Positions 99 through 64,000 of a stretch of DNA of 64,000 nucleotides are shown here, piece by piece; within the stretch, counting starts at the first letter, position 1, and each line of letters begins with the position of its first letter. The position numbers were made by a program, and so were the translations under genes. The notes under the pieces are model-generated. The model saw only the letters and a program-made list of their open reading frames with translations. It did no database searches and was not told the origin of the DNA. The DNA is from Bugula neritina (taxonomy: Eukaryota; Animalia; Bryozoa): assembly GCA_964035545.1 (NCBI GenBank), contig OZ037767.1, positions 25,188,628 through 25,252,627 of the forward strand, in the 5' to 3' direction.

Positions 99-3000
99 CT
101 TTAGCACTGAAGCCTGTTTTCATTCCCTCCAAGTCTTTAATTCGGCGTCTGAGTTCAGAGAGCGCCTCTCTTTGCCGATCAATAACAAGCTGGTGACGTT
201 CTCCTCTACACGCTAGTCCTAGAGAGGACAACTCCTGTTTTATCTGATTGTCTTCTTCTAAGACTCGTGTCTAAAGAATGAAATATCAATTGAGGCAGTG
301 TTGCCTGTGTGGCTAACAGAGAAATGAGGTTTGTGTATATAAGAAAAAGTACATTACACAAATTGTTACTTCATTGATACACTGTTCTTTACTCAAAAGT
401 AATTTTTGAATAAATGCACATTCCAACATTTGATTACCCAATAGAAACTAGTAGTAGCTTTCAGTCCAAACCAAAACATTTCCACGTTTTTCAACATAAG
501 TATAAAAATAAAAGCATCATATTGTGAATTTAAAGAACAAACTTTTAAATGAGAGCCTCATAAAAACCTTTGTCAACTACAAACATTAAAAGCACGTAAT
601 GAAAGTTAAAACAAAATAACAAAAAGATATGTAAATGAATGGTTTATGTCGATTAGATTTGTATGACAGTCCACATACCTGTTCACTGTGAGAATCATTT
701 GCTGCTGCCAGCTTCATATCCAGTACCCGCACCTGGTCTTCTCTATCACTCAGCTCCTTGCTCATCTTGTCCAACTTAGATTTCAGTTGGCTGTAAAACA
801 CGTGTAGGGTTACTTCAGCATCGATTTATTGGTTTAGTTAGCAATAGATGTGTTATTTGTAAAAAGCATTTTGTTCCTACTTCAATTAGTACCCAGATAA
901 ATTACAATGTTCAATTAATATTACTCATATTATAAACACTCCTGGTTTTGTTATTGTATCATTTACCAACAGGTTTGCCAATCAGTGGGTTTTGCAATAT
1001 ATCTATATTCAATTTACAAGGCGAGAGTTGATGCACTGTTTAAATAGACACAAGTCCTACTTCATTTCACTTGATGACCCGGCGACAGCGGCGGTCTTCT
1101 TGTCTACTATAGTTGACAGCTTAGCCAACTGCTGCTGAAGCTCCACCACTTCCTGTGACTTCTTTCTCACCAGGTCTCTGTTCATCTCTAGCTCTCGCTT
1201 GTGGGAGTCAGGAATCTCACCAGTCATATCCTAAAAACAAAAACAGCAGCTATGACAAAAGTAGCTATGGCAACAGTGAAATAAACTAGTTTTCTACTTA
1301 GTTTGAATCTTACTACTAACAGACCTACTCTATGAAATGAAACTTTTCAACAGGCCATAAAGTTGTGGAACCAGCCTAATTACACATAAAAAAACAGCTT
1401 TTTACATGAATTAATGGAAGTATATATACTTTTCATTGCAAATAAAAGAGAGTACTCTTTCAAGTTGATGAAACATTTGAAGAAAGATCTTTTCATTTAC
1501 ACTTTTAGGCATAACCTGGCCAGATCCTTTCTAGAATGATTTCTCAGAGAAAATTTGTATCAAAGGCTAACATCAAAAATCTCAAATCTTGCCAACGAAC
1601 TAAATCACTATACATCAACTTATTTATACATACTTCTTATGACAATACAATACTGAAAAATATCTTTCAAGAACATCAAATTATGCAGTCCATAGTTTTG
1701 CACACTTCTTATTTTATTATAATTTGGATTGACTAAACAATTCTATTTATATTAATAATAATATTTATATAACGCTGCTGTACACGAGACACTTGATATT
1801 ATTCCAAAATCTTCAGTTGAAAAACATTTTACTTTTGCAAGGAACTTGTCATTCTAGAACTAAAAATATTATAGAAGTAAAGATAACCTATAATAGTTGA
1901 AATCCTTGATTAAATAAACAATTTAATTATTTATAATACTAGTACAAAGCATTAGATATATGTAAAGGTTCAGTGAACTTCTGTGTTATGCAGTAGACAT
2001 AGCAAGGTGTTATTGTGTGAAATTAAAGTCAGTAGTAACTATAATAATATAATCAAAATTATTAATAATTAAAACAACTAATTCCAATGCCATCTATTTT
2101 CAAGTTATATTATATAATACCAACTGACCCTGTATATGTAGGTCAGATTAATTTGGGTACTTACACTAAGTCTAGCCTGAGCTCCAGCTAAGTCTTTCTT
2201 CAAACCAATTATAACATTCTGTTGCTCTTGGTTAATTTTCTTGAGATCAATACATTCTTGTCTACAGTATAAAACAATAGAGTGAGCCAGCTGTAAGCTT
2301 AATGTCTTTATCATCTAAAATCTATATGTTCACTCAAGTACTTGCGTTGATTGTCACAGCTTATATATTAATATAACGAAATACAGTCTCCAAAAAAGTT
2401 TTATGCTCCATAAAATGCCTTTGTTGAGAGTTTGTATTCTCATTTCAAACAGGCATTTGATACATCAGTAATAATTCAATAGTTCAGTGTTATTTGTATA
2501 GTACTTCCTGTGTCGTTTGTATGAATTGTAAAAATATTAGAATTAGTCATATAATTATCTGAGAGCTTAGAAAACCAAACTATAATACATGTTTACAAAT
2601 TTATTGTTATTTTTTTAATTAAAAGTTTTTAGCCACCCTAGGTAGAAAATTAATTTGCGCAGTTTTCATAATGGATGCCTGCACCCACTAGCTGAGAAGT
2701 TGAGGTGAAAGTAAATGTACAAAGTCTATGCCTTTAATAGTAGTACTATGATTTCATATTCTGAGACCATCAGTGGTTATTATTAAAAAGAGATCCTCTA
2801 ATCCAGTGCAAAAGAGATTGTTAAAATGATTATTTTCATTTTATGTGTTCATATCAGATGGGATCTCAAAAAGAATGAGTTCAAAGATAAAACAACAAGC
2901 TAGCCCAAGAAAAGCAGCTTGGGTCTCTTTGAATACAACATTTTCATCTTGCATGAGTGTTTTGTAATCAACTAGCAGAACATGACAGGTGTCCTAGAAT

Positions 3001-6000
3001 CTCTACCTGTGTTTTTCTGGATATTATTAGTAGTGTGTACTGAACTCATGCTGGCTATAGTTATAGCTGGAATCTACTTACTGCATTTGGTGTGGTAAGT
3101 AAGGAACTATATAGCTTCCATTATCAGAATATAAAATAATTGATGGAACTTGGGCAACACCAAGTCTAAGAGTTGAGTGACTATCAAGTGCCGTGAATTA
3201 AAAATGGCAGCTTTATTTAGCAATTAGACAACTAGTTATAAACTTATTTTAGCTAAAAAGTGTACAGCCTTTTTGAAGTCAAAAATATATTTCAATGGTT
3301 TCGAAAATTTAAATTGAATATGTTTTTAGCAAAAAGAGAAAGTCACTACCACAAGTGAGAGCAACCCGAAGATATGACCCCACATTCTATTTCAACATGG
3401 ATAGACCAGTGTATGCATTTGGTACACCTGAGGGGTCATCGGCAGCCCTTTCGGCAGCAACTAATCTTGGCTGGCAGCCCGACAGCGAAATGACTCAGCA
3501 TATCTGACAACTTACTTTTTATGGTGAAATGTTCTTCATCAATGACTTGAGAGTATAATTTATTTGCGGAATCAAATTTTTTTATATAGTATTACAATAA
3601 TTTTTTCAAATAATAAAATGCTACTTGCATGTATATATGAATAGCAAATGAGTTGATCAGTGTTAAATAAGCTGTGAGTTGAGAAAATGGTGAAATGCAT
3701 TTTACAAATAGTTGATGTTGTGTAGTAATGTGAATTCTAATTCAGTTTTAGGAAAAGGTTAACAACACTAACAGAGATTTGAAAATTTTACAGCAAAGAA
3801 TTAATTATCAGACACAATCTGTTCTCAATTTCATGTAGCTTAAAACCCTTCTTGGAAGCAAATGATATAATAAATATAAATATTTCAATAGTGAATATAC
3901 CATGTTTTATCTTTACTAAGATGAGTATAGCCAAACAGACTACTTACGAGATTTCCATGATAGTGTAACGAAAGTGACCAAGTAAAATTTGCACTGACTA
4001 AAATACAACTCCTGACACTTGTTTGTGTTGCTAACATTGAAACACAAACTGATGGCAATTGATTAACACAGTATTGGTGCCAGCACTAATAAATAATCAA
4101 TAACCTAATAGATTATGAAGCACTAGATTGAATTACTGTAAATCAGGTGTTATGCTGCACAAGTTGATAAAAAATTCTTTTGATGATTTAAGCTATTGAA
4201 ATAATGCAAGAAAAATAGCAAATCGAAATGCAGTGTATTGAGCATATTCATAGAGACGTGAAATTGACACCATAACCTTCCCTGAGCTGCCAACGTTGAG
4301 ACTTGGTTTACATAGCATCAACGGAGTGCAAGTTGAAGTGACAAAATCTAATAATGAGAAGGAATTCCCAGCAGAGATCATGGATAAGGTCTACCTGTAT
4401 TTCTACATGACCATTTGCTGTTTTTGGGCTTTCACTTATTTTAATTTATGTTTCAAATACTTGTTATACTAGATATATCAAAATACTGAAGCGTGTAGAA
4501 TCACTGAATTGGAAGATTATATTCCAATTCAGTGTGTAGAATTCTAACCAATTCCTAGTTTGTTTAAGCTATAAATAATTAATTTCCAACTTAAAAAGTA
4601 TATATAACAATCAATATAATGTAAATACAAGACAATCTCATGAACTTCAGAATATTATTAAAAGTAATGCAATATACTAAAACATATAAATAGATTCTAA
4701 CTTCTACTCATATATCTAAGCATTGAAACAGATTGTTTAAAAGTTATATTCATAGTCTCATACTATTCACCTTGTCTACTTTCTTACAAACAAGTTTTCT
4801 GCTTTTGTGCTAAAAGAAAAAATATGAAATCAAAAGTCCCCCCCCCCTACAATACTCAACTGTGATTGGCTATAGCAACACATATTAGAGTTAGCCTGCA
4901 GTTCTATAGTTGATGTTTAATTAGTTGTGTTTTCAGTACAACTGAGTTGCAGTGTGTGCCTCAAGAATTACTAACCTGACTGTAGCTACTGTGTGCTGTA
5001 GTGCCACAACGTCTGCAGTAGGTACTTGCTCTACAATCACTTTAGGCTTAGGCTGCTCAACAGCTGCTGCTTTCTTCGGAGGTGGACGGGAGGACAACTC
5101 TTGGAGCTTCTGTTTGAGAGAACTACAAGAGAGTGAATATTATGTGACCTTATATCTGGGTTGATGAATCTTCAAGCAAACATTCTTAAACAGCCACTCT
5201 TATTTTTTCGACTGCAAATGAGATTTTTTAGCAATAAACAAATTTATGTGCGCCAATATTATCTAAGCTGCATAGATAGCTAGAAGCAAAATGTCTAAAT
5301 CATTAGTTTTTTTTTCACAAATTATTAAGTGATTGAGTCAATATACAGCAATATACACATATTATTATTACAACAGTTTTATTATCCAAATGAGTAAAGG
5401 TTTTACTAAGTGGATATATTATACAAGGTTAACTTTACCAGGTAATTCCTTTTAAAAAATGATTCTTCGAAATAAAATGCAATAATTGCAGATTATAAAA
5501 CAAATTGAAATTCAAAACATAAAAATGCTGGTTAAATAAGATAACTTCCAATCATTTGATCATGGGCATTGCTTTCAAAATTTATATAAACTTTAATAGA
5601 ATTTCTGTTGACACAACTGTAATACAAGCAAAAACCAATGTGTAAAAATTTTGTTAATTTATCCTACTTACTTCCTATCAAGCTGCATTAAAGTTTGTAA
5701 AACAAAAATGTTTTGCAATAATTTACCTATTTTCTTGCTGCAGGGTTTTGCTTTTCTTCTGAGCTTTGTTCAGCCGTTCTTCCATGGAGCAGATGGTAAC
5801 AGAGTGCTGTCTGATTTGCTCCTTGTAGCTTTGCAGGTTCTCGTCTTCATTTAAAATCCTAGAGTCAAAATCGGCTTTAAGAGCTTCAATTTCCTCCACT
5901 TTGGATTGTTCTAACTCAGCCAGTTCCTTTCTTAAGTCCTCCTGTGATATTGTGTTGAATCAATGGATTAGAAAAGTTTTCTTAAGTATTCATCAAGTAG

Positions 6001-9000
6001 TTTAACCAACATTTCCTGAGTGTTATTAAATTGATTGACAATAAGTTGTGTAAGGGCTTTTAATTTATTCAAACTACAAACAACCAAAAATGGTTTTAAT
6101 TTATAATACCCTCGATAAATTACTATAAACTAAATCACAGACTCAAATGAAAAACTCCATAAGAAAAACAGAATTTCATTTCGCTTTTTCCATCATATGA
6201 ATCATAGTTATAGAATAAAATTGGCATAAACAAACAATAATAAGCCAATACATTTAGGTTACAAGCTTGAACTAAACTTTACTAGTAATTTGACATGAAT
6301 TCAAGCTGTTAACATACCTGAACCTTTTCACTGTCTTCCAGTAGTTTCAATGCTTGACTCGCAGCTTCCAGTTTGCTTTTCTCTGCTTCTTGCTGTTCAA
6401 GGAACGACTGTTTGAGTGCGGCCATATTGGATTCTAATTCTTCACACTTCTTTCTCTCAATCTCTACTGAACTTTCTCTTCTCTCACTTTCAATAGCTCT
6501 CAGGTCTTCAATGGTCTTGTTCATACGCTCCTCGACTGCAGGTCAATTTATTTAATTATATTATTACAGAAGAGTCAAAACTGCTTGTAAAAATGACTAC
6601 AAAAAAATTTTTGTGAACAAGAAAATGCTAATTAAAATTTGAGAAATGATTTTAATTTGGTAATTGCATACTAATATGAGATTCAGTTGCAACACAGGCA
6701 GTTGACTGGTTACATTAACTTCATTTTCACACCTATACAGAGGTGATCCTGTTAGGGTTCATTTATACTAATTTCATATTGCAGCTAAAGTAACGAGGAA
6801 ACTGGCTGTCTATACCTTCCCGTCTAGCCTGTTCTCGGGCCTCAGAAACCTTTTCAGTCATTTCCTGTTTGAGATTAGCGGCTTGTGTTGCCAGCTCAGC
6901 TTTGTGGTTAGCTTCAATGGTTCTTATAGTAGACTCTACACTATCTTTATCTTTAATAGCCTTTTCCCATTTGGAGAATAAGCCACTGATGTGTTTGGAT
7001 GGTGCTAAAACAAAATGTTTTCACATAACTTAAAATAACTTAAAAGAGGATTCATTTAACAATTTGAATGTAAAATTTGTAAAACTACAGCTATCAACAA
7101 AATTATCTGATTCCAGATAAAACACCAGTTTGGTAAGATATTTTAAAACTCAGATAATCATATCTCATAACTTCTAAGTTGGCCATCATACTAAGTGCTG
7201 ACTGTACTAAAACATACCATCAGTGGATAAGGCTACGTTGATGCCGCACTTCTCTAATGCGTCTTCAATATCCTGCTGCCAGTTGAGTTGAGCTTGTAAG
7301 TTGTCTACGAGCACCTGCTTTATGATCTGAATGGTGTCAGAAGCACCCAGGAAAGAGAGAGATTGCAAGAGAGACAACTCCTGTTTGAGTGGCCCACTTA
7401 GTAGGCCACTAGCTTGGAGACGACTCTAAATTAAAGCATTATAGATGTGTTTCTCACACTACAAACATTATGTTTAGCATATGATACGACAATCTGAACA
7501 CCCAAATTAAAAGGTCCAGTACGGTTATTAGGCTATTTTTACCAAAAGCATAAAAATAAAAACAAACATAGGATTTTATAGGAATCACTAGTACAAGATG
7601 CTGAACTGTAAGTAAAAAGTTCAATCGTGATTTAGTAGATGGAGGGAATACTCACATGCGACTCTGAAAGGTGCTGCTTCAGCGCTTTCAATGCCTTCTC
7701 TCCCTTCTTTTCTTGAACTCCCTGCTGTTTGATTTGTTCCTTCATTTCTGTGATTTGCTTTTGATTGGTTGTTCTCTCATCAATTAACTTCTTCAGAGCA
7801 TCCATTAGCTGGTCATCAGGCATTTCATCATCCGGGTATTTCACACCAGGAGTTGAGAAAGCAACTTGCACTACACGGTTTCGAAACCTCTCAGCCTAAA
7901 ATTAGTGAAAGCACCAAAATTAGTGAGTCAAGTTATTCAACATTTACGTAAGTAAATAAGACATTGTCAAGAAAATAGCACGTAAATGTGATTGGCTGAA
8001 TTTTTAAGAGGTGCAAATGTTTTTTCAACTTGTCTGACCGCCTTTGAAAATGAGCCTGTTCGGGTTATAGAAACTTGTGGCAATTTTTTTGTTAAAACAG
8101 GGAATGTTTGAACTGAACTTAAATAACCAGCTCACCTTCTTGTTGACCTGTTCAAGGTCAACTCTGATAGCTCGCTCAGCTCTCTGTGCGTCTAGAAACT
8201 CGGCCTTGCAGTGTTGAACCTCAGACTGTAACTTCATCTGCTCGGCACTAGACTCGGCTAGTCGAGCTTCCTTCCTGTCCATCTCTGCCTTCATCGTCTT
8301 CATCCCATCTGTGAGTTCTTGAATCTTATTCTCTGCATTTTTAAATTGCTACAACGAGTACATGAAAATGATTAGTAATCTGAAGATACTAGGCACACGA
8401 CACTATTGATACTGCATAACTATAATGCAGGTCAAACAGCCTTCAAATAATTGTTTAGTCAGTTTATATATTGCACTCTAAATATTTTTATAATATTAGT
8501 ATTCCATTCTCATTAATTGAAAATAATCACTTAAATCATTAAGTCAAAAGTTGTTTTTAGTAAAAAAATATGCAAATAAGGAATAATCTATCAGCAAGCT
8601 TGAGACATAATCTAAACTCTCATATGAATGTGTTAACAAGAGAAAACAATTCATAAAAAAGCTATAAAATGACTGTGATCACCAGTCGGGTCTGCAATCA
8701 GAGTGAAGCTGTTTTGCTTTTACTTGAAATAACAAGAGAGGGGAGATGAAAGATAGAAACAGCCTACAGGGTTTCTCATTAGGGAATTTCTAACATACTA
8801 AAGACAAAATCATACTCTTATTGGAATATAAGATTATATAATAATTATATTCATGATTAAATTCAAATATAACAAATATGTAAAATTATTAAACTCATTA
8901 ATCTTATTAACTGCATGCAATATGAGCCAAGCAACACCACTGCATGATAGAAACCGTGTACACAGTGTGTGTGCCCAACTTTCAACAAACTGTGTGTGAA

Positions 9001-12000
9001 ATAGCCATGTGTGATCTTGCATAAAAGTTGGTCCACTTAGCCCTCACCCCCTTTAATAAATTATACTTAAGCAGATACTAATGATCCATACAGAAATTTC
9101 TTCAAACAAAATGCATATACTATATCTCATATTATTTTGCTGTAATAAAAATGGTTATAAAATAAAACTGTCCATTGAGTAAAGGAAAGATATGCTACAC
9201 TTTGTGTACATCAGTAAACACAAGCATGCACATAAAATATGCATAAACCAGGAAAACTGTTTTTATGGCTGTCATTGCTAGAGCCAGTTTCGATGTAATC
9301 TTTTATGCAAGAGAAAGCATGGATAAGTGCAACAACATAACATACATGTAGAGCGTTGTGGTATGGCAGCATGAGGAAATAATAAACTAATACTAAGGGA
9401 TGAATCTAATTGGTAAAGTTAAGGTGAGGTGGATTTCTTACTCTTTTTTGTCTATAATCAGCCTATTGTAATCATAAAAACATGATTATAATAAATAATA
9501 GTTGAACCATTAGCTTACCTATACATGCAAAGACTATACAAAATACTCCAATGTTATGTCCAGTATAAAAAAAAGATTTTTATTCTCAAAGTACTTGCTC
9601 ACAACTAATAAACTATCTGATAAAATACCTATACACTTTTATACTCTGTGTAGCATGTTATGAAACAAAGATATATAGCAGCTTATAGCTATCGCGAAGT
9701 AACAGTAGCTGCACCAATCAAACCGACTCATTTCTCTACTACACGACACCAGAATAAATAGCTAGTTGAAAATACAGACATAATAAAATGTACCTAGATG
9801 TTAACAAAAATTCCACAAATGCAAACGCTTATTTCACAACAGACTCCACAAATGTATATTTCACAAGCCCTGACTACTAAGTACACACTGTACTCACCAA
9901 ACGGAGGCCAACAAGCTCCTTATCCCTGGCTGTTTCTTCACTGCTGTCCTGCGCTGACTGTTTTACTCGAGACATCTTAGATGTCAGCGTTGCTATCTGC
10001 ACATCTCTGTTTCTGACGTCTTTCTTTAACTGTTCAATTTCTCTAGTCAGTCTGCTGATGGATGTATCCTGACAAGATAGAACTCTAGAGTTGACCCTTG
10101 CAGGTAAGGTGATGCATACAGGTGATGTAAATGCCTATTATTAGCAAGCGAAGGTATTTCATCGCCTTCAGATGGTTATGTGCAAATGCAAGAGCATAGC
10201 GAGATACGAAATATATAGAAATGGTAAACCTTTCAGATATTAAGTTAAGCCCATGATTAATTTAACTGTTTTAATGTGATGCATCTCGTTGAAAACCTGG
10301 ATTTTCTCAACATAGCATTAATTAAATTTACCAATTGTTATATATTATAGTCAATAATAAATATTTCCTAGAGCTAATGAATAACAATCAGGTGGCACTT
10401 GAACAAAAAATAACTTGTTCATCCCAGACTCACAAAATTTTCCTATATTCTAGCATTTTCCATTCTATAATGCAATGCAAAAAAATGTTTTCTTGTCTTT
10501 AGTGTTGTGCAATAATTAAGAAAGATAATTGCGACTAAAAGAATTAGACTCTTGTTTCAAGGTGATAACTGCACAGATGTAATTAAAGAGAGAAGATAAC
10601 TTGAGAAATCAGAAATATCACAGCATACAGATGGAAAATAAACTCCTCTCTCATACCTTTAATGTCACATCACAGTAGGCCAAGCTAGCCTAGTTACAAG
10701 TAATTTAATAGATTGTGTAACTAGCATCGCCAGGCATTGTTCAAACTAAGTGGGAAAATTCACAAGACTAAGGAATAGTTGCATCCCGGAACTAGGGACA
10801 ACTCCAAATAAAAAAGTGCAACTTTACAGCTGCATACAACTAAAATCTTGTAACAACTGAAGCTGTAAATATTCAACCAGTTTTGGCTGAATTTTAAAAA
10901 GAAGACAAATTAGGTTTTATTGCACAAATTTCAGCTAATTTGTTATACCTACTGCAAGTATAAGATGTTTGAATGTTAAGGCGATTTAATATGAAGTAGT
11001 AAGAAATTCATTGTTTAAAATGTCAGCTATTGGCCAATTACAAATATTCTTACAAGAATGAAACCCGTAAATGGGACGTTAAATGCTATGCTATATATTA
11101 AATATTTGAGCAATATTGCCAAACCCCATCAATGAGCTACCTTTTCTTACAAAGTCATCGTTTCAAGTTGTATAAGTATCTGTTACTTCATCATTAGTTT
11201 TTAAACTATGAATATTTTTCAACAAAGATCACATGACTAACCTTAGAGCTCATATCTCTTTGAGTTTGATTCACCAGACCGGATATGATATTCTTATCCT
11301 TTCTAACTCTCTCCAACTCAGCTCTGACGGAGTGCAGCTCCTGCAACTTGTCATTAAACTCCTGCACAGTCACTGTATCTTCAGAGATCAAGTTCTTCCT
11401 CGATCTCTCCAGCTTGTTTACCTTTCAGTGGTTACAGAAATACGTGATTACATGAATACTTAATGCAATGTACCTAAACCAAGTTACAAAACTATTTTTA
11501 GATAGATTATTCAGACTTGATTAAAATATCTTACAATAAAAAGTGTCACCCATGTTTTTACAACAAACAACAATCAATATATTCATAGTCTGAATATAGA
11601 AAACAGGACTGACTTAAATAATGTTATTTTATTAAAGGAATAATAGCAAAGCTAACATAGTAGCTATATGCTATATGCTACTAACATATTATAGCTGAAT
11701 TGACATACACATATCTCCATATTATTTTTAAAAAAATATTCTTACACCAGCAAATATGGGTTACAATTTTATTATTAATTATTAAAACGAAGTGCTACAA
11801 GTTTTATAAATACATACAAATATACATCTGAGAAATAAGTTATGTAATTACATCAGCTGTGTCTTGAAAGTAGTAACAAAGATTATTTGAAAAATCAACA
11901 TATGTAATCAACATGCAACCCAACAATAGTTGTGATTGGCTCCGGCACTGAAAGCAACACTTTAAAAATATCACCAGCATTGCACAGTTAAACCTCTGCT

Positions 12001-14818
12001 GCTGTAGATATGCATCTGATATATACAATACAATCAATGTGCATAGGGAAATGTGGTAGTGTATTTTGTAATAGACATCAATATCTCCCAGCAACTAACC
12101 TAATCTCTTCCCCTCTACAAACATTAATTAATATAATGATTGAATTGTTAGTTGAAAAACATGGTGTTTGTTTATATGTGTTCATAACTGATTAACTGAA
12201 CACCTGATAGTCAATAGTATAATGTAGTGCCAGTTTGGTTATTGCTTTAGGTTAAATAACAAACCTTGTCTTTCAGCACAGCTATTTCTGTCTTTTTACC
12301 ATGTAACTCTTTCTCTAGCTTGTCCACCATTTTGTTTGTGTCACTATTCTGCTGCTGAGCTGCCATTTGTTGCTTTAGTTGAGTGAGTTCAGCGTTTAGT
12401 TGCTCTAAAATTGAACAAAGAAATGCATTAATTTTGTTATTAGCTTTATAACTCAACATTATAAGAAAGGATAAAATTACTCCCACCTTGCTAATACTAT
12501 TTGCTTTGTGTGCAAAAATAGTTATATTGTCATCCTTTCAAGAATTCAAATAAATTCGACACTTACATTTTAGTAAAAAATATATAATTGTTATTTAATT
12601 CTAAAAAAAAAAATTAAAAAATTTAGAAAAATATTATGATATTTGATTTAAAGAAATTTTATTTTAATTGTTTTATTATTCAATATATTTTCTCTAAACC
12701 AGCCATTATATAATGAACCATATCATAATATTAGCTTAGAAACAATGCTAGAAGACTATTATAATAACAAAGCAGCATTTGTAAGCTACTAAATTGATCA
12801 CTGCAATCACCTCACTCAATACTAATTGAAGCATTGAAATACTTTATAACATTATGAGAGGTCAATAATACTGCAACTTCCAATAACAATACAAGTTTAA
12901 ACTGGCAGCTAAAACTACTAGAAATTTGATTATTAGATTATTGAAAGACATTTCTCTTTCAGTTATAAATTAGATGCAACTCAATTTTCCAAGTCTTTCA
13001 AAACTTAAACTAATTATTTTTCTGACCGAATTTAATCATGGGAGAGCATGTGAGTCTATTAAATATTGGCAGCCTAATTATAACTAGTCAATTATAACAA
13101 GGAAATCAATTTATTATTGAATATTATAACAGGCCCTTAAGATTGCAATTTGCAATTGATGTCTAAAAGAAGATGTAATTTGAATGCATAATTTCTTATG
13201 TCATTTGTAGATCAGTCAGTCGCAGCTATTAAATTTGAATCAACTAATAAAATACTAAGAAAATATACCCAGCATACCAATTTTCAAGTTTTTCCTTTCA
13301 TAATCCTTTTGAATAGCCTGTAACCTCATCAGTTCATCATTTAGTCGAGCTATCTTTTGATCTTTCTCTTTTTGTAACGTAAGAATATCAGTGGTAGGAG
13401 AGTCAGCTGGTCTGTCACCGGCAGCAGGTGGACCAGTCACCCAAGACCCTGACAAGTAATATAATATATAAATAATATAAATACAGGTAAATATAGAATA
13501 TAAACACAGCTACATATATAATATAAATACAGGTAAATATAGAATATAAACACAGCTACATATATAATATAAATACAGGTAAATACATAATATAAATACA
13601 GGTACATATCTAATATAAATACAAGTAAATATATAATATGAACACAGGTAAATATAGAATATAAACACAGCTACATATATAATATAAATACAGGTAAATA
13701 TATAATATAAATACAGCTAAATATATAATATGAATACAGGTAAATAGATAATATAAATACAGGTAAACATATAATATAAATTCAGTTAAATATGTAATAT
13801 ATATTTTATGTTGTGTTGTAACTAACTTTATTTCCTTAGAATAAAAAAAATATACAAAAAGAAAAACTAGAAAGATTTTAACCTCTAATTGCTGTAGGAA
13901 TATCAGTCTGGTGCCTTCGAGCACCTGCACTAAGTGGTCGTGACCGAAGGGAAACAGTAGCATGCTGCGGTAATGCTGTGGGTGCTGAGGAAGTCCAGCT
14001 AGGTAGACTGGCTGGCTGGGTGTTCAGTGGCAAGTGTGGGAGTCCTTGCTCTTGAGGTGGGGGTTGATATGGGTTCCGTGTTATACTACTGTTAGCTTGC
14101 CACCCTCTTTGTTGTATGGACGGCTATAAACAGGCAAATACATTATATAGTAAATTATATTTTATATCAATTTGATATATCATTCTCAAAAATTTGTTCA
14201 AACATTTAAAAAATACATTTTAGATAAATAAACATAAATTGTCGCTGTTACCAAATTTAAGACTAATTTACTATTTGTGAAGTATATATTCTCTTACAAA
14301 GTCAAAATCCACAGCTTCCCACGTTATAGCTATACTAGGTAAAAGGAATTTAGCTTTTATATCATATTTGAACTTCCACATCAAAATTGAAATAAGCAAA
14401 CACACAGTGAAAAATAAAGCTGCTTTCATCAAAAGATTCCATTGATACTGTAATAATCGTTTGCTTTCACAAAATTTGATTGCTGTGAAGCAAAATAAAA
14501 ACAAAGATTATTGATTGCTGAACTTACATCATCCAGTTCGAACTGGTACACTGACCCTCCATAACCAAATCTGATTTGATCAAATGGAGCGAGTCTCACA
14601 GCTGCGTTTTGGATGCGAGTTTCATTGATATAAGTACCCTGAGCAGAGTTGAGATCTTGCAATACATAACAGTTTTCTTCTTCACAAAACTCAACTAATG
14701 CATGCTGAAGGTCAACACTGGGTGACTGAATGGTTATATCACAATTTTCTCTACCCACTGTAGTTATTTTTGGAGCTAGTGATAAGAGAGTGTCAGTTGA
14801 GCGGAGAAACCCTCTCAT
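99..14818 (-). CDS. FHAD1: Forkhead-associated domain-containing protein 1 (FHA domain + long coiled coil); 3' end lies left of the window
   Basis: 17 phase-compatible GT-AG exons: 14818-14528, 14123-13883, 13448-13278, 12404-12265, 11421-11242, 10068-9898, 8348-8136, 7895-7656, 7425-7218, 7004-6816, 6535-6318, 5941-5727, 5122-4976, 2261-2165, 1230-1061, 790-679, 270-99 (~1058 codons, no stops). N-terminal FHA domain ([31 protein letters not shown]). FHAD1-type blocks [56 protein letters not shown]. Confidence 0.92.
1261..1274. promoter_or_regulatory. RFX X-box-like motif in an FHAD1 intron
   Basis: GTAGCTATGGCAAC, a 14-bp near-palindrome fitting the X-box consensus; motif match only. Confidence 0.35.
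2982..3507 (+). CDS. Putative 96-aa single-pass membrane protein nested antisense in FHAD1 intron 2262-4975
   Basis: Exon 2982-3094 (ATG, ending TG|GTAAGT) joins in phase to exon 3330-3507 (TGTTTTTAG|C, TGA stop). Protein: [96 protein letters not shown]. Hydrophobic segment followed directly by C-KKRK; both exons are GC-richer than the flanks; AATAAA at 3612-3617. Confidence 0.7.
13455..13800. repeat. Intronic minisatellite, ~21-23 bp degenerate unit (AATATAAATACAGGTAAATATAT-like)
   Basis: Directly visible tandem array filling most of FHAD1 intron 13449-13882. Confidence 0.9.
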
Positions 14819-15817
14819 CTCTGAAAACATGAAAAATAATTTAGATTAGCATTTTGATATTTTTTATTTTTGACTGAAGCACCATATTCAAATAAATAAT
14901 ATAAATAAACAGCTTACATGCAGACTAAACTTAGAAACATTCAGTTAGCATTTAATTACAGACTTTTCTGATATCCAAAACTTTTTTCACCACTATAGAA
15001 ATTTTTTGGGACCAACATGAGATGTTTGAAGAACTAACAAAAATCATATAATATTATAAAATACATTTGCTGTCTATCAAATATATAAAATAAACATATA
15101 TACGTTATATACCTTATATTTTAATAGTAAGTTTGTTAAATATTTTCACTTTTCTACTTTTTTAACACTTAAGAAACATATGTATAATCTCATAGTCTAA
15201 TAAAAAGGTAAACTTAAATCTAAAGTTTTAGGCTATAAAAACATAGTAGCCTAATGGTAAGTAAAGTACGTATTTGCACTAAAATTGAAACCTAATCATA
15301 ATGTTTGTGATGTTATCTTTTTGTAATCTCCAGCTTTATTAGTATGACTATGAGTATTACAATACAAGTTAAAAGTTACATTTACATTAACTGCTGGAAT
15401 TTTATATTTTAGAGCGTTGACTACGTACTATTAATAGTATTTTACATTTACTTGCTAACTTTAAATATAAATGATATGATTATATTTATTATAACCATTA
15501 TCATAAGTTATACTAACACTAATAGTTATACTTATACTAATACTAATAGTAATACTAATACTTGTATTAACTTATACTAGTTTAAGTTATAGTTATAGTA
15601 TTAGTTATTCATACCTGACTCTTGTGTCTATAATATTTAGATATATTACTTGAGAAATGCTACAGTGTAATATTTTTAAAACCAAAATTTAAATGCCAAT
15701 CAACATCTTCCATTAAAGAGTGAGTGACATAATAATGTTTACTAAATAATATAATTTGTCCATAAGGATAAAGTGAAAGGGCACACTGCTAGCAGGTGTT
15801 ACTGACGCCTGCGCATT

Positions 15818-15830
15818 GTTGCTTAGATAC
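15818..15830. promoter_or_regulatory. RFX X-box-like motif in the FHAD1/GEMIN5 divergent promoter region
   Basis: GTTGCTTAGATAC next to a GCGCA (NRF1 half-site-like) motif in a local GC island. Further X-box-like strings at ~16103-16114 and ~16129-16142. A candidate FHAD1 5'UTR donor (CAG|GTATGA, minus strand) lies near 15614. Confidence 0.45.
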
Positions 15831-16504
15831 ATTATTTGGAAATACTCTCAATTCTTTTATGATCAGTATTTTAAATTTGGCAAAAATATTTACTAAATAA
15901 TTTTTAAATTATATTATTTTGACAAAAATATGTTTAATTTTTTTTTAATTTAAACTTCTTTTAGATATCAAAATGCAATTGCTTCATACGCTAAATCTTC
16001 ATAGCAATTTATAGCTAAGACTCCTACAACGTTTAGTAACGTAACAGCATTACGAAGGCTATAATCATTATTCACGATAAATTGTCCACAAACATTCTAC
16101 AAGTTTCATGGAACTAGGCTATTAAAGTTATTCCATAGAAACCGCTTGAAACAGCATTGAGTTGTTGGTCACTGGGTGCATTGGTTTAGAGTTCTTGTTT
16201 AGTTTTCCGGTTACAAGTCCACACACACATATGTCTATACTCTATACTAACTCTGCACTTAGTCACTCACAACATGGTGCTTCTTTTAGCGGTTTATGTA
16301 TGGTTTTGTTCGCATGCATAATGATAATGTCATGCTTGAATATGGTTAAGTTTGCTTTTTAACAAGTTCACTCTGAATCTCATCCACCCATAAAACTAAC
16401 TAATTAAGTATATTAAAAGAGTTTCTTTAGAATTCATTGAAAATCATTGCCTTTGCTCACCCTTACGCTATTCCTTGATTTGTTTTGACAAAAATTTACT
16501 GGTA

Positions 16505-16900
16505 TATCAATTTCAAATCAATATGAATATCATTATGATTATGATTATCACAATATCAATATGAATATGACTACAGACTCTAGGTATATCAATATCAATC
16601 AATCAATGGCCATGAGACTGAGTATCAGTATGACTATGGGTATCACTATCAGTATGAGATTGAGTATAAGTTCACTAGTGACTATCACTATTAGTATTAG
16701 TACGAGTAATACTAATGACTAATGAGTAAAATATAAATATTATTATTAATTAATATGTGTAGTGATACCCATGATAATGATGACTATCAGTGTCATCATT
16801 ATGTCATTATGATGGTGATCTATTTTATAACTAATAGTAACACTCACTCTCATACTTCATATTGATAGTGATACTGATACTCATACTGGTAGTCATTTTG
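16505..16900. repeat. Low-complexity degenerate hexamer tract (ATCAAT/ATGAGT/AGTATC-like)
   Basis: Visible 3/6-bp periodic sequence; a similar TACTAA tract lies at ~15480-15610. Confidence 0.6.
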
Positions 16901-17411
16901 ATTTATAAACAAGATCTCTTAACTTGCATAAATCAGAATCTTGATAAATTTTTGGTTGCAGCTAGTCTTGCAAACTTGCAGTTATAAGTTACTTATAGTA
17001 ATAGTTATTAAATTTTAGAAGTTTGATTTTTAGCTTGATTAAGCTCAAATTGGTGATTACTATTAGACGTGAATTATTGCTGTTTTTTAGGATTTCCTGG
17101 CTCTACAATCTGAACTGATAATTCAATAATTCAAACAAGAACATGAAACCAGTAGACATTTTTATCATCTACAACTGATGTACTTCTGACTGTTAAAAAC
17201 ATTAAGGGTACTGGTTTTAATTTCATAAATGTGACTGCTTTTTGATGTAATTCGCAGTAAACCTATGAATAATTAATAGCAGCTTTATAATTTCAACTTT
17301 GGTTAATTTTATGTGAGCATTTGATTTCAGTTTATATGTCTCTCACATAACAGCCACTGACTAAGTATATTTGTTTTTTTTTCAGTCAATTGCATCTGTA
17401 TTGGATTCAAC

Positions 17412-20400
17412 ATGACTCAGTCACTACCATCTTCTGCAAACTGGTATTGCACTAAAATTATAGATGTTCATGACAATTTTGCTGTTTACGGATCTCGAAG
17501 TGATATTAATATTTTACAAATCACATCCAATTTTAAACAAAATCACCTTCAAAATACTGGCTTCCCTGGAGCTGTTGACCGTCAATCTGCAGTGTCTGCT
17601 ACTCAAAGCAACCACCAATTTGAACGAAATTTAAATTCCCAGAAATTTGTTAACTGCTTACTAATTTCAACACTTACTCGACTACACAAAGAGAAAATTA
17701 CTGCCGTCCGTTTGTTGAAATATGTAAAAGACGACTACGCAGATAGTAGCGATCATTTAGAAAACAGTTGGAGGTATACAATGTTTACCGGGGCTGAAGA
17801 TGGAAAAATAAAGCTTCATTTTTTATCATGGACTGATTGTGCATCACAGAAACTACCAGTCGTGAAAAGCAAGCTTCATTCCGAGCATCAACTGCCCAGA
17901 AATGTATGTTAGTTTTGACTGAATATAAAATAATATTGAATATTTTAGTATACTTTCGTGTATTTGGCTATGTTATTAAGTTTTGCAATTATTTGTGTCA
18001 ATGTAAGTGTGCATGTATACATCATGTAATTAGGGTATTTCTGTGTGTATAAGATATTCTCAGCATATTTATGACATATTCTAACTTGATAATATATTAA
18101 ATTTTGCCATTACTATGTTGTATTATTTCAGTGTAAAGTTACATGTGCTGAGATTTGTGCTGGTCAACTGGTTATTGGGGATGATAAAGGAAACTTGAGT
18201 TGCTGGACATGGAAGACGGGCCTTACCAATCAAACTAAACTGGGAACCAATTCTATTCTTACCTTAGAGTTTAAAGAGTCGGAATTGTTATTAGCTGTTG
18301 GGTTAGTAATGGCTGGTGGGCTTTACAGTTGCAGATTTTGATTTTTGTAGATGACCATTATAGTTACTTTATTATATAAATTGTTGGATATTTACACAAT
18401 TTATGCAAATGAAGACTATATCTTTTATTATTTTAGAATTTACTTCTTCAAGTATTCAACTTTTAAGTAGTTTTACATTATAAATAATTTAGTTGTCGAC
18501 TAAAATATTTTGTCTATCATATAATTTATATTTGTTAGGACAAAGAACGGTGGCATATTAATATATAGTGTAAGCAATCATCAGGTTGTTCTAAAGCTCA
18601 AAGGTCATGATGAAGATGTTTACTCTCTACAGTGGAGGCCAGACTCTCTAGTTCACTCGTTTGCTGGTAATGGTGCTGACACTAGTTAATCTGAAGTTTA
18701 TTTTATGATACGTTGTTGATTAGTCAGTACCTTTAAGTTGAATGTTGCAATCCTAAATGGTAATAGTAAAAAAGTGTCAGGTTAGAGAACCTTAAAGTTA
18801 ATTGTTTTGTCTACAAAGCTTACCTAAACTGTATGGACTGATGTTTAATTCTAAAAGAAGCAACCTCGCATGATCATGCTACTCCAAACACTAAATTTAA
18901 ATTAAAAAACCAGAAATAGTAGTGGCTGAGAAATTTTAAAAGATTTCTCAGTCTCTATTATTTCCGGTTTTCTAGTTTAAATTTAGTATTTAAAGTAGCA
19001 TGATCATCCAGGAAGGGGGTTGCTTTCGCTACTTTGCTAAATATTTTGCTAGGACAGCTAATCTCTGGAAGTCGAGATCGAACCATCAGAATGTGGGATT
19101 TGGCCACCAGGCGCTGTGTTTCATACAACAAGCTGCCCAACGCAGTTAGTGGTTACAGTAAAGGGAGACAGGACAGAGAGAAGGTGTGGCTGAGTTTAGC
19201 ATGGCTGCCCACTGGCCAAGTTGTCTCTACAAGTCCAAGGTGAGAATGCTGACGGAATACACATATTCTTGTGGCCGGGCGGCAGAAAGCTCATGTTGAA
19301 AAATATTTTAGTTTGAAAATCACGTATATTTCTCTGGCTTGGGCTAAAGTCCTACATTTAGGTCTTTGCTGAAAAATCTAAATATGAATTTTCAATCATT
19401 TGTGTATCGAAAATGGTCTACCATATACCTAGTGCCTAAAATTTTTATAAACTAAAAGCTTTGTACTGGGAAACATATCGTCCCTTTATGCTAAAAGGAC
19501 TTGCACCACTGTTGTCTTTTAATTTGCATAATTTCCAAATTTGATTGTAAAGTCTAATTGGAGTTATGGTTCCAGTACTAAAGTTCTCATCTCAACTAGT
19601 TCAACTTAAAGATCCGGTATATATATTACAGTGGAGAGCTTCTAGTGTGGACATTCAGTACTAACTCTAGTCAGTGGCTCCCTCTGGTGACAAGTGGTCC
19701 TAAAGGTCATAACCGGCTGGTGTTTACCCTAACTCTCTTTGAGGGTGGCACTAAAATGATTAGCACTTCAATGGATAGAAGTTTAATCTTATGGGATATT
19801 TCTGCTACTGCCATAGCAACAAATGGGAATGCTGCTGCAGTGACAACTCCTTCGAGTTTATCTGAAATAGAGGCAGAAGGTCATATAGCTGGTATGTTTA
19901 TCTATATATATTATATATGTTGCAATAGAAGAGTTTTCCTGGAGAACTATAAATAGTAATCGATAGATTATAATCCTATGTTATGATTTTTTTGACAAAT
20001 AAATATATTTTGCACTTCATGCAATTGAAAATCTTGAAGATTATGAAATTGAGTGAAATTTTGGAAATCAGCATTTCTTAATGTGTTTAGCTAAAGTGCT
20101 TTCGCTTGGAATTCAGGACTAAATTCAGTTGAAATTGGTGTAAAATGTTCATATCGTTCTTCATGTTCTATGAAAAGTTAAAGTCTTTCATGTTTTTGCA
20201 TTACTTTGATGCCATTTGTAGGTTTCGACGTAAAGTTGATATAAATTTCCTTCAAGTTAATTAAAAGCCTTCTGTCATCTTGTATGAACATCTGAAATAC
20301 AACTTTTATAATACAATCAACGAAAACATCTCATGCATTATGTATATTAACTGACACGTTTTAGACACTTTTGTCTTCTCACATCACAGGATATATTGTA

Positions 20401-23400
20401 CAGTGTACGTAAGCCGTCATGACTAGAATTAGTAACTCTCAAGCTTATTTATATCCGGTAGGTAACCCATGATTATTTGTGTTTTCTTGCATGTCTCTGC
20501 CAGTTGATGATGATGGCATGTGGCAGAAAGTAGACGTGACCTCTAGACAACCTTCGGATTCTCAGAGGACTTGCTGTGCAAAAATAATCTTGAATTTGCC
20601 AACATTTGGTGGTTTTGTGTATTGTGTGCGGGCATCTTTAGTAGACCCAGGTATGTTATTGAACTTCTAGGTAGTATTATGACTAGGTAGCCGTGTGACC
20701 AGGTGGTGGTGTGACTAGGTGGTAGTGTGACTAGGTGGTAGTGTGACTAGGTAATAGTGTGACTAGGTAGTAGTGTGACTAGGTGGTAGTGTGACTAGGT
20801 GGTAGTGTGACTAGGTAATAGCGTGACTAGGTAATAGTGTGGCTAGGTAGCGGTGTGACTGGGTAGTACTATTGTCCTACTGATTCCTCAGGTAGACTTG
20901 CAGTTGGAGTGGGAGACAATCTCATCAGAGTGTGGAATGTGAATGAAGGAGCTGGACCATATGACTGTACAAGTATGTGGCAGGGCCTGAAGAGTAAAGT
21001 AACAGCAGTAAGTTAACTCGTGTTGTGATATTTGTGCTGTGGTATTGTTAGTCTATATATTGACAGATAGCTTAATTATCATTGCCAAACCCTAAACCTG
21101 GCGGTTTAGCAAAGTGTGAATAATGTGTCTTTGCTCTAAGAAAAATGCTCATTAATATCTTCTGGGTTAGATTATCTCATGCCATCCTTTCAAGAATGTT
21201 AAATCAAAGTTTAAAAATATTAATATTTTGAAGTAAGTGTTGGCCTACCTTAGCTGGAACAAGCAAAATATCGATGAAAATATTTGAAATCTGTGAGAAA
21301 CAAACAATGTTGCAAAAGTTACGACTTTCATCACCAACATATGAAAGTCATAATAAAACTGGGTTAAAGAAATATGAAATAATGTTAATAAGACCATTCG
21401 TATTGCATTGTTTTAGTTGGCGTGGCATCCATTTAATGAGAGCAAGTTAGCCTATGGCACTGATGATGGAAGGGTGGGTGTATTCCCATCCCTTAGTAAG
21501 AAGGCACCAATCATATTTGGAACTTACCATCAAAAGATTGTGTATGTTGTGTCTTGGGGCCCTCGCCCTTTTACAGATGGTAAGATTTCTGTTATATCAG
21601 TTAGCTGTTAAACCTTTCGCCTGGCTTGCATTTTGTATCAGTTAATAATGTGGAATAATGTGATTTAATGGCAACTTTTATGATGAAAATTATCATTATT
21701 TAAATGTCCTAATATTGATATCTTTCATTTTGTTAATATATTGAATGATTTTTCTGTTTAATTATTCCATCTATCATCTTCTACCCCATAACTGACTTCT
21801 ATCATCATTAGATTCTCTGTTCCTAGGTCAAGTAGATGGGGAGTCTATGACAGTGTACAGTGTTGGTGATGGTACAATTTTGGTACACAGTCTATCTAAG
21901 GCGGCCACTGAGCCCGCTAAAGACATCAATGCTATTCTCACTGAGGTCAACGGATCTTCAGTGCCTACGAAGATACGGAGTGAACTAGCCTGGTCTCAGG
22001 ATTACAGTTTGCTGTATCTAGGCAACGAGGATGGGTGAGTCATTCGGTTACTCTTCTCTGGTTACGCAATACAATGGAGAGCAAATGGTCAGGTTTTATT
22101 TCTTTGCTTGCTTATTAAACACCATACGTTTTTGGTTTGTTTTTGAGCCGATTTATAGGGCAACTGGTGTGATTTAAAAGATTAGACAATGATTAGTTGG
22201 TTAAATATAAACTCCTCGCCAAGTTCAAACGTACCAGTGGTTTATTGTTTGGAGTTCCGTTTTGTTGGTTGTTTTTGCTGACACTTCTGGGGTGAGGTTT
22301 TCCTTTAACTGCAGAGAATAATTATTACTTTCTATAATATTTCTTAATTACATTTTACTCACCATTCTATCATTGGTTGCTATAGTGGTTTACTCTGTAA
22401 TGTGTAGATCAGCAGTAAAATCACTATTTTGGTATTGGCTAGATTTCATTCGCATCTTCCTGTTTTTTTGTTATTTTAGGTCAGTTTTGGTTGTAAAAAG
22501 AAGTGATTTCAAGTGCATATGTGTAATAAACGTGTTCAATAAACTGGTGAACTGCATACGACCCCAGCCTTGTCAGCTTCCAGCAGGTTCTTGCTCATCT
22601 CTCATGGCTATCGGTAGTAACGGGCACCTGGTTAAGGTTGTCGACTTATCTGCTGTTAACCAATCACTCTCAGGTATGGGAAATTTATTTTAAAATTTTG
22701 TTAAATTAGTTGCTAGAAATCTTTAAATAGCCATCACATGTTGCACTTAAAACTGTTCCAAAAACTATTTTAATTAACTGAGTTGTCTTCAATTTTGTTT
22801 CAAGATTATTTTTATTTTTGAAAATGTATTTTTTCAATGACCTGCTAGTCATTTCACTACTGTTCAGCTTTTTCTACCACTTGCGGGTCACAGTATAGAT
22901 TACCATGTGTTTGTTACATTCTTTTTGTTGCTAAATGTTTTATACTGTCCAGAGAATGTACATGGTTCGTTTATTTATGCAGGGGAGACTATTCCGGTTA
23001 TAAACGAAGCTGTTGCTGTGCTAAAAGGCCACAAGAGTAGAATAACAGACATGTGCTGGCCAATATTTGAGCCTCACAAACTCCTGACTGTATCCTACGA
23101 CAGCAAAGCTTTGGTTGGTGTCAGCATGCATTGCTTACTTCAGCTATTCTAAAGTCAGCGCCATATTTTTAAATTTTTTAACTAGTTCCATAATATAAGT
23201 TTACACATATTTGAAAATTTTATTACTTCAAAATTATCTGATTTCAGTAAATCTTGTTAAAAAGAATCATGTTTTACTAAAAAATATGCTTAAAAAGGTA
23301 TTTTATGCTGCTAGTGGTGTCACATGAAGCTGCATTTATTTTAACTGTTCAAGTCGAGTTTGAATTGTTTTTCAATTAGATGATACATTAACCCAAACAT

Positions 23401-29400: not shown

Positions 29401-30933
29401 ACTGATCACTCATAGATAGCGTCTTCTAGCATCTGTAGATTTTGTTTATTTATAAATATTGGGTCATCAACTATTCAAATCTGTACCTTCATATTTGTTA
29501 TTGCAGCATTGTTGGTTATGTTGGTGTTTTATGTTTATTAAAACATCATTAGCTTCAGTCATTGGCTAAAACTAAGTGTCGGCTTTAATCATTGGCTAGG
29601 AATAAGTGTAAACTTCAATCATTGGCTAGGTATAAGTGCAAGCTTTAATCATTGGCTAGGAGTAAGTGTAAGCTTTAGTCATTGGCTAGGAATAAGTGTA
29701 AGCTTTAATCATTAGCTGGGATTTTAATTAACTAGCCTTAACTAGCCAGTACAACATCCAGTATGCCCGCTGCCCTTTCTTATCCCAGTCTTGCTATCTG
29801 TCTAACAGGATGTGATGTGGCACAGCGACTGACTGACTGCTCCTTCAAAGACACCCGGTTTCTCTCCGACTATGCATTGTACATATGCTACCTGTGGTCT
29901 GCACTCATTATAAATACTAGGTCGGGCTCCCGGGACTCCACCCTCATCAAAACTGATGCTGATGTATCCACAGTTGATAACTCTTCGGAGTTGTCACCCA
30001 CTGTATGTAATGGGGAGACAAAACCTAAAGCTAATGATATACTATCTGCTGTACAGAACAACATGCACCTGCTAGCGTTCTCCTTGTGTCATGGGCTGTT
30101 CATACCCTGGGCAGACAGCGATGCCCTGTCACAGTTTGCTGTGCACCTGTCAGACATTAAATCTGAATCTAGTCGTGACTATAGTGAAACAACTTCCAGC
30201 ATTGATCTGGTAAGTTTGGTTTCCAAAGCTGCTATTGATTACATGGTTATATTATGTAGAAGTCATGCATTTTTGTTCAAGTTTTTGTTGTGTGTACAAA
30301 CGAGTATGTTTTTGTTATCAAATAAGCTCCCCAGTGTATTTGTTTAGCTGTGTTATGTTATATGTACTCTCAATTTATTGTCTGGTATTTCGTCTTGCAG
30401 TGAAATTTGTTTGACATTGTGTGCCAGCAGTATTAGCTGTAGCTGATGTTCATTATACATGTAACTGAATTGTAGATGAAACTGGTATCCTTTGTTGATA
30501 AGGTCAAGCTGAATGAGAAGTTGGATAACAAGGTGAGTAGTCACTTCTAAGTTTCACACTATAAATATGGTACTTGCACTATATACTATAATACTTATAC
30601 TGTATATATTGCTTGCACTATATACTATAATACTTATACTGTATATACCTAAATTATATATAATGCAAGTTTGCACTATAATTTGCTGATCTATGAGATT
30701 TTTTGCAGGTGCTGAAATGTATCCTAGCTATGCTGCTGGACTTGCTGAGGGAACTGTACATATACATGTGTTCACACGACGACGCAGGGCACCTGCCCAA
30801 CCTGCCAGCCGGCTCCAAGATAATAGAGGAATGGGTGTCACTCCACACTATGTGTCAAGAAGTTAATATAGGATTAGATAGTAGCGTCACCAGTGCATCT
30901 TTTCAGGATGCGTCTAAACAGGTTACCGAATAA
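17412..30933 (+). CDS. GEMIN5: Gem-associated protein 5 (tandem WD40 propellers, TPR-like module, C-terminal region), complete, ~1501 aa
   Basis: 25 phase-compatible exons: 17412-17903, 18132-18301, 18539-18666, 19053-19239, 19632-19891, 20504-20650, 20892-21007, 21417-21579, 21827-22034, 22480-22673, 22983-23113, 23554-23782, 24325-24438, 24774-24977, 25270-25362, 25824-25961, 26699-26846, 27108-27227, 27583-27666, 27821-27950, 28348-28533, 29196-29376, 29809-30209, 30476-30532, 30709-30933 (4506 nt). Diagnostic motifs LPSSANWYC, STSMDR, LPTFGGFVY, GVGDNLIRVW, WQGLKSKVTALAWHP, YGTDDGRVG. AATAAA at 31164-31169. Confidence 0.95.
20678..20868. repeat. 16-bp minisatellite (GTGACTAGGTGGTAGT, ~12 copies) forming most of a GEMIN5 intron
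   Basis: Direct tandem array inside intron 20651-20891. Confidence 0.92.
25178..25255. repeat. 11-bp tandem repeat (GTGTACTGATA-like)
   Basis: Visible degenerate array just upstream of the 25270 acceptor. Confidence 0.8.
26497..26510. promoter_or_regulatory. Strong RFX X-box motif in a GEMIN5 intron
   Basis: GTTGCCATAGTAAC, with palindromic flanks ATG/CAT; motif match only. Confidence 0.45.
29557..29720. repeat. 30-bp minisatellite (AATCATTGGCTAGGAATAAGTGTAAGCTTT, ~5.5 copies)
   Basis: Direct array; the copy B counterpart (~50443-50517) has only about 2.5 units. Confidence 0.88.
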
Positions 30934-63979: not shown

Positions 63980-64000
63980 ATGTTACCATCTCACTCTCCG
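63980..64000 (+). CDS. Start of methyltransferase copy B (MLPSHSP...), truncated by the window edge
   Basis: Identical to 42676-42696. Confidence 0.75.

Follow-up and report, generated by a model that had tools for sequence, protein, structure and literature searches.

A probable membrane microprotein gene nested antisense in an FHAD1-like intron of Bugula neritina and related genomes

Introduction

The question raised by this locus is whether a short, spliceable open reading frame (ORF) lying antisense inside an intron of a bryozoan gene is translated and, if so, what kind of protein it makes. The locus belongs to a 64,000-nucleotide (nt) stretch of Bugula neritina DNA, referred to here as the window (assembly GCA_964035545.1, contig OZ037767.1, 25,188,628-25,252,627), with a G+C content (GC) near 32%. 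The source genome comprises 321 contigs with 216,009,554 bases in total, and tzBugNeri2.1, the B. neritina assembly made by the Darwin Tree of Life, is given as 216.00 Mb in 320 scaffolds plus the mitochondrial genome (PMC11480708). An earlier inspection of the letters alone (the sequence-only reading) had proposed that positions 2982-3507 of the window carry a hidden two-exon gene for a single-pass membrane protein, nested in an FHAD1 intron.

We conclude that this is a real protein-coding gene encoding a type III membrane protein, and put the probability of this at about three in four, a figure that excludes any mechanism. Three more distant relatives have an orthologue at the same point of the host intron, with the start codon, transmembrane exon and phase-2 intron of this gene, and the first exon has kept its amino acids across genera where its synonymous sites are saturated.

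Structure and genomic setting of the nested gene

The coding sequence lies on the plus strand and begins with an ATG at 2982, preceded in frame by a TAG at 2973-2975. The coding part of exon 1 (2982-3094) contains 37 whole codons (2982-3092), which specify the start, an 8-residue N-terminus and a transmembrane helix, and it ends in phase 2 at the donor TG|GTAAGT (3094/3095). The intron (GTAAGT...TTTTTAG, 3095-3329) is 235 nt long, contains stop codons, and is matched in position and phase in the relatives. Its acceptor, TTTTTAG|C (3329/3330), opens the coding part of exon 2 (3330-3507), and the codon split across the junction (TG at 3093-3094, C at 3330) encodes Cys in B. neritina. Exon 2 then contributes a basic cluster within a disordered tail of 58 residues (codons at 3331-3504) and a TGA at 3505-3507, giving a product of 96 residues in all. 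A candidate polyadenylation signal, AATAAA, follows at 3612-3617 and is identical in both B. neritina lineages compared below. Direct reading and exon-wise translation reproduced the sequence-only model to the base. Each exon alone gives only a short ORF, of 38 and 50 residues, which explains why neither appeared in an ORF track cut at 60-70 residues.

The gene lies antisense in one intron of a host gene, as had also been proposed. Minus-strand host exons flank it on both sides: exon B on its 5' side (about 2166-2262; an open coiled-coil frame with acceptor ...tgtag| and donor |gtaagt) and exon A on its 3' side (about 4976-5110; an open frame with donor cag|gttagt), so that it sits wholly within a single host intron on the opposite strand. 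A Pfam scan found an FHA domain in the host gene, which also encodes a long coiled coil, and the label FHAD1-like is consistent with these two features, on which it rests. A second public assembly of B. neritina, GCA_010799875.2, was annotated by AUGUSTUS with transcriptome hints (PMC7576161). Its contig at this locus (L005) has two separate host models, of 675 residues (4334-13539) and at least 698 residues (13788-20522). Together they resemble one FHA and coiled-coil protein of FHAD1 size and are probably a split gene model; the AUGUSTUS host model in L005 spans the nested gene.

To ask how readily such a structure arises by chance, two-exon models were scanned on both strands of the window. 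With loose signals (any GT and AG) thousands of two-exon ORFs were found, while strict rules (an ATG, a GTAAGT donor, five pyrimidines before the AG and at least 90 residues) left only four, with both strands of the 64 kb included. Besides the nested gene these comprise three models that begin on or overlap exon-like ORFs, namely the FHA exon, host exon B and the ORF at 44042-44365. The two exons of the nested gene have a GC of 39% and 48%, compared with 29-31% in the intron and flanks. The conserved block that contains exon 2, described below, can be read through in the predicted frame only; none of the three frames of the minus strand is open there, and coding on that strand was discarded. 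A genome search found each exon in single copy and no paralogues of the gene.

Selection within Bugula neritina

The window (983-13552) was aligned over 12.6 kb with L005 (7995-20521), and the two assemblies are about 89% identical at this locus. In non-coding DNA the divergence between these two public assemblies named Bugula neritina is about 11%, a higher figure than a single species would be expected to show, and it fits the known cryptic-species complex of B. neritina. With the conserved blocks excluded, the host intron has a background of 10.6% substitutions and 1.3 indel events per 100 nt.

Against this background the 113 nt of exon 1 differ by 7 substitutions (3 nonsynonymous, 4 synonymous), and exon 2 has 4 in 178 nt, or 2.2% (2 nonsynonymous, 2 synonymous; probability of four or fewer, 2e-5), all of them in its first 30 nt. 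No indel occurs in the 291 coding nt (P = 0.024), and the start, the stop and both splice sites are intact in both lineages. The gene's own intron has 25 substitutions together with a 6-nt and a 2-nt indel, a net length difference that is not a multiple of three. With both exons pooled there are 5 nonsynonymous and 6 synonymous changes; exons 1 and 2 give 0.26 and 0.29, respectively, for the ratio of the proportions of nonsynonymous (pN) and synonymous (pS) sites that differ (Fisher P = 0.025). No other stretch of the 12.6-kb alignment is free of differences for as long as 3355-3530 (176 nt), which covers most of exon 2 and 23 nt past the stop; the second-longest perfect run is little more than half this length, and every host exon falls short of it. 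The exon 2 block has a GC of 0.46, as in host coding blocks, compared with 0.27-0.33 in conserved non-coding blocks. It has no match in Rfam, and folding gave z-scores of -0.2 and +0.5, neither strand doing better than shuffled sequences; an RNA family or unusual RNA structure was rejected on these results as an explanation of its conservation.

Orthologues in more distant relatives

Contigs from more distant relatives were found with the host exon beside the nested gene as bait or, for one of them, by scanning metagenome contigs with a degenerate pattern taken from the alignment of exon 1. Three carry the gene: L012 (Logan SRR22824305), L013 (SRR25569780) and L014, the contig found by the pattern scan (ENA ERZ1740065, 8.6 kb). 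Host exon B is 80-83% identical to the window at nucleotide level in L011-L014, and in L012 and L013 it is the only part that aligns as DNA (80-82%). In the same host intron, next to exon B and antisense to it, all three have an ATG-started transmembrane exon with a phase-2 donor at the same place. The similarity of exon 1 to that of the window stands at z = 13.8 in L012 and 9.6 in L013 relative to composition-matched shuffles, with 0.7 and 2.4 for control contigs.

The synteny is complete in L014, which retains host exons on both sides. Host exon B (155-247, minus strand) is followed by an in-frame TGA three codons before an ATG at 380, then 34 codons plus AG and a GTAAGT donor. After a 70-nt intron that ends ...tgtttttag|C, as in the window, come a 63-codon open tail and a TGA, for a product of 98 residues; host exon A, matched by tblastn, is at 1401-1541, and five more host exons lie beyond it. 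In L012 an in-frame stop lies 15 codons before the ATG and a 64-nt intron of the same position and phase gives a product of 97 residues. In L013 exon 1 and a phase-2 GTATGT donor are present, and the contig ends 297 nt later. A further contig, L011, has no orthologue in the 285 nt of intron that it covers. Frame, start, stop and splice sites have thus been kept in the second B. neritina lineage, in L012 and in L014, and exon 1 with its donor in L013. Just downstream of the nested stop, a 118-nt block is 75% identical between L014 (840-957) and L012 (167-284), the rest of the intron being unalignable, and it may be an element of the 3' untranslated region (UTR).

The five-sequence alignment of exon 1 has eight invariant residues (M1, W13, C19, E21, A29, Y32, L33 and L36). 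Across genera its synonymous sites are saturated (pS 0.63-0.92) compared with a pN of 0.19-0.51; between L012 and L014 the values are 0.83 and 0.19. Saturated synonymous sites in an exon whose protein is preserved are the signature expected of a translated exon, and purifying selection at the amino-acid level is seen in exon 1 across genera as well as in both exons within B. neritina. The sequence-only reading had named nested synteny and purifying selection in related genomes as checks on its model, and both came out in its favour.

The same alignment bears on where the gene begins. An AG lies between the in-frame TAG and the ATG, and the two exons could be the 3' end of a longer plus-strand gene in which upstream exons for a signal peptide and ectodomain splice at the CAG at 2976-2978, making a type I protein. 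A conserved block just upstream (2745-2950, plus strand) would suit such an arrangement. It lies directly 5' of the start codon, is about 98% identical between the B. neritina lineages compared with about 89% for the background, has a GC of 0.316 and occurs once in the genome; all its plus-strand frames are closed, however, so that no open frame crosses it, and a 5-nt indel at 2955-2959 separates it from the ATG in the lineage comparison. The candidate acceptor also has a poor polypyrimidine tract, the initial ATG occupies a single alignment column in all five sequences and follows in-frame stops, the L014 ATG stands only about 130 nt from host exon B, and AUGUSTUS chose the same start. We regard a longer gene as very improbable. 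For the two-exon gene that begins at 2982, the block is possibly the 5' UTR or promoter. The start codon of L014 and of L012 stands only about 130-150 nt from host exon B, which leaves room for a promoter only if it is very compact or overlaps that exon.

Existing annotation and database searches

The gene had been proposed as hidden and possibly unannotated, which proved incorrect. The exon 2 peptide matches a GenBank hypothetical protein of B. neritina, EB796_002767 (P0002), which has 96 residues and the same pair of exons; its coding sequence lies on contig VXIV02000327.1 of GCA_010799875.2, within a minus-strand gene model that continues into the FHA-domain model. It is the same gene with the same nesting, and 91 of its 96 residues are identical to those of the window product, although it comes from the lineage whose DNA is only about 89% identical here. 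The gene is therefore already in public databases, where it has no name, family or function. In that lineage (the US lineage; L005 and L002-L004) the last 35 nt of the intron (window 3296-3330) are open in frame from an ATG, and gene callers for this reason made a 70-residue ORF, P0001, that lacks the helix; the corresponding frame of the window is interrupted by a TAA.

The window exons were searched separately, and P0002 was used for whole-length searches and for folding. Pfam gave nothing above noise with each exon, with P0002 or with the exon alignments. A word-indexed protein search with exon 2 returned B. neritina sequences only. When 1.84 billion representative proteins were searched in full by HMMER with P0002, the only matches were B. 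neritina ORFs and a single repeat protein, the latter a spurious match whose score came from one 20-residue stretch matched many times. The absence of a recognisable family, which the sequence-only reading had noted, was thereby borne out. As a control, the host FHA exon retrieved graded relatives at 96, 93, 89, 87, 83, 57 and 51% identity, which indicates that the protein database does contain related genomes. The searches with the nested protein were blank because the exon 1 ORFs of the relatives were never called as proteins. The earlier suggestion of a lineage-specific gene holds in part: nothing is detectable outside this group of bryozoan-like genomes, but the gene is older than B. neritina.

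Small multi-exon membrane proteins are routinely missed, and in this case no gene caller made the protein in three related genomes, so that orthologues which do exist went unseen in two very large protein searches. Their recovery through the flanking host exons provides a worked example. What emerges is a small conserved family in a phylum for which functional annotation is very sparse; it is defined by a single helix in which a buried Glu is invariant, a phase-2 intron placed at the membrane boundary and a freely evolving tail. Nested genes and orphan single-pass proteins are both familiar, and the biology is not new in kind.

Evidence against translation and alternative explanations

Several observations weigh against a coding gene. 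The GenBank entry is a hint-assisted AUGUSTUS prediction (PMC7576161) and not an experimental result. Every public contig found with exon 2 (L002-L004 and L006) is genomic, and the product of a spliced transcript was not found among Logan-derived proteins. The Logan and JGI contigs with exon 2 had been considered as transcripts, and all proved to be unspliced genomic DNA of the US lineage. The tail of L013 is ambiguous and yields no single model. Tails of different genera are not significantly alike: BLASTP produced no alignment, and Smith-Waterman scores hardly exceeded those of shuffles (z = 3.1, 1.4 and 1.1). A shared mini-motif, [DS]-P-[TA]-F, was noticed by eye and post hoc, and was dropped when alignment statistics gave it no support. 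Within B. neritina, on the other hand, the last 50 codons of the tail and 23 nt past the stop are unchanged between the lineages, synonymous sites included. A tail that is perfect within B. neritina yet fast-evolving between genera could point to constraint at the nucleotide level; the possible reasons for the contrast are a newly acquired, strongly constrained function in the B. neritina lineage or a nucleotide-level role. The invariant residues of the helix do not cluster significantly on one face (P = 0.065-0.25). Finally, two blocks without a frame in the same host intron are as well conserved as the exon 2 block, so that conservation alone is no proof of coding; their GC, however, is 0.32-0.33, below the 0.46 of the exon 2 block. 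One is the block upstream of the start codon. The other, 306 nt at 3985-4290, has no open frame on either strand and is about 98% identical between the lineages compared with about 89% for the background; it has no Rfam match and no unusual fold and is single copy. It sits about 480 nt past the nested stop, and its homology to the block downstream of the gene in L012 and L014 is not significant.

These blocks, together with the conservation of exon 2 at synonymous sites, are what would be expected if exon 2 were a conserved non-coding element of the host intron with an accidental open frame, lying beside a chance spliceable ORF, and if the GenBank model were an ab initio false positive. An open frame in at least one of the six frames of such a 178-nt stretch is not unusual (29% of shuffles), but the single frame required here is open by chance in 5%. 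In relatives where the introns no longer align, the ORF is found again with its ATG, helix and intron phase and with an open tail of about 60 codons; the synonymous sites of exon 1 are saturated and its protein preserved, and the GC of the exons resembles that of coding blocks. A non-coding element is accordingly a very unlikely account of the locus.

Slightly less remote, though still improbable, is a transcript without a working protein, either an antisense or intronic long non-coding RNA that regulates the host or an RNA with a functionless product. Antisense nesting is common among regulatory non-coding RNAs, and the almost free evolution of the tail sequence between genera would agree with such a transcript. 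It does not account for the purifying selection that acts on the amino acids of exon 1 between genera, nor for the survival in three lineages of open frames of 58-63 codons while their sequence turned over, and no stable RNA structure was found.

Predicted topology and possible function

The hydrophobic segment of the protein has a Kyte-Doolittle maximum of 2.75 over 19 residues and runs for about 28 residues from residue 9. The net charge changes from -1 ahead of the helix to +7 over the 15 residues that follow. AlphaFold2 modelled P0002 as a helix at residues 3-41 (predicted local distance difference test, pLDDT, 92-98) with a low-confidence tail (pLDDT about 50). The one strong transmembrane helix followed by a basic cluster that the sequence-only reading had described, with its N-out/C-in orientation, is upheld by these results. 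One bilayer-spanning helix near the N-terminus, a positive C-terminal flank and no cleavable signal peptide are the features of a type III protein, and by the positive-inside rule an N-out/C-in topology is inferred. The short uncharged N-terminus (8-12 residues) would face outward or into the lumen, the helix would serve as an uncleaved signal anchor, and the basic, disordered C-terminal tail would be cytosolic. In the tail, the features that persist between genera are an open frame of 58-63 codons, the intron position and a basic start, with a net charge of +5, +7 and +3 over the first 12 residues in the three species.

Two features that had been read as functional did not hold up among the relatives. 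The juxtamembrane Cys, taken as a palmitoylation signature, is encoded by the split codon at the membrane boundary, which specifies Ser in L012 and L014 and Thr in L013. The Tyr-containing tail motifs proposed as the functional core (a stretch of 13 residues, and NLGWQPD) are specific to B. neritina. The suggestion built on them, which shares the gene-level conclusion, was that of an adaptor or trafficking protein that spans the membrane, is palmitoylated and works through Tyr-based motifs in its tail. YxNM is an SH2 docking motif, as in DAP10 and CD28, and YxxPhi is an AP-2 sorting motif; YFNM in the B. neritina tail fits both, and YxNM arose in 0.35% of shuffled tails in a post hoc test. The perfect conservation of the tail between the two B. 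neritina lineages, the acidic helix residue, comparable to that of DAP10/DAP12-type adaptors, and the presence of LIME1 (0.88) among language-model look-alikes also favour an adaptor. However, YFNM, VYAF and NLGWQPD are not kept in L012 or L014, where the aligned aromatic residue is Phe or absent, the juxtamembrane Cys is replaced in all three relatives, and the LIME1 score, below 0.9 with fewer than 170 shared features, counts as a lead only. The adaptor idea, weakened by this lack of motif conservation, is possible for B. neritina only, and as an account of the protein it is unlikely.

For the type III membrane protein preferred here, selection appears to act on the helix (W13, C19-x-E21, A29, Y32-L33, L36) and not on the tail sequence, which would make the interior of the membrane its most likely place of action, tentatively as a small auxiliary or regulatory subunit. 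The buried Glu would pair with a partner membrane protein, and the tail would be mainly a positively charged anchor and a fast-evolving linker. More speculatively, the gene may represent an undescribed, bryozoan-restricted family of membrane microproteins, long kept in the same FHAD1-like intron, whose invariant Cys-x-Glu helix binds and regulates a partner (a receptor, channel or transporter), with a tail that has taken on a new, strongly constrained function in B. neritina.

Other features of the window

A tandem segmental duplication of about 16 kb relates 26633-42696 to 47509-64000 (offset about 21 kb, 94-96.5% identity), and several of the listed ORFs are duplicated with it. An 18-nt satellite of about 86 copies occupies 51400-52954 and yields an artefactual ORF of 474 residues. 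A 23-nt tandem array of 14.5 copies lies at 13468-13801, inside an intron of the host gene.

Comparison with known systems

A search of the ESM Atlas with the protein returned generic small single-pass proteins only, with scores in the chance or distant range, where those below 0.9 with fewer than 170 shared features are leads only; the structural matches of the Atlas are meaningless for a single helix and were set aside. The look-alikes were headed by stannin (SNN; 0.92), and LIME1, SMIM36, TMEM52 and others were among them. Stannin is an animal protein of about 88 residues which, like the nested protein, has an N-terminal membrane helix, no signal peptide, a Cys near the helix and a cytosolic tail. 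It is a chordate family, however, and the likeness comprises only 150 shared features, in the chance or distant range. Membership was rejected, as PF09049, PF09050 and PF09051 had no match at E <= 10 with P0002 or at E <= 1 with the exon alignments.

SMIM36, TMEM52, FAM163, opalin, LAT/LIME1 and DAP10 share the general build of the nested protein: an outer segment that is very short, a single helix with basic residues beside the membrane, and a disordered tail. These vertebrate small single-pass proteins and adaptors have no sequence relationship to it. The conserved juxtamembrane Cys of the LAT type is a Ser or Thr in the bryozoan-like relatives, the conserved tail Tyr docking motif of the DAP10/LAT type has a counterpart, YFNM, in B. 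neritina only, and DAP10 differs further in its cleaved signal peptide and ectodomain cysteines. DAP10 and DAP12 have an acidic residue in the membrane helix, and the nested protein matches them with E21, which is invariant in all five sequences.

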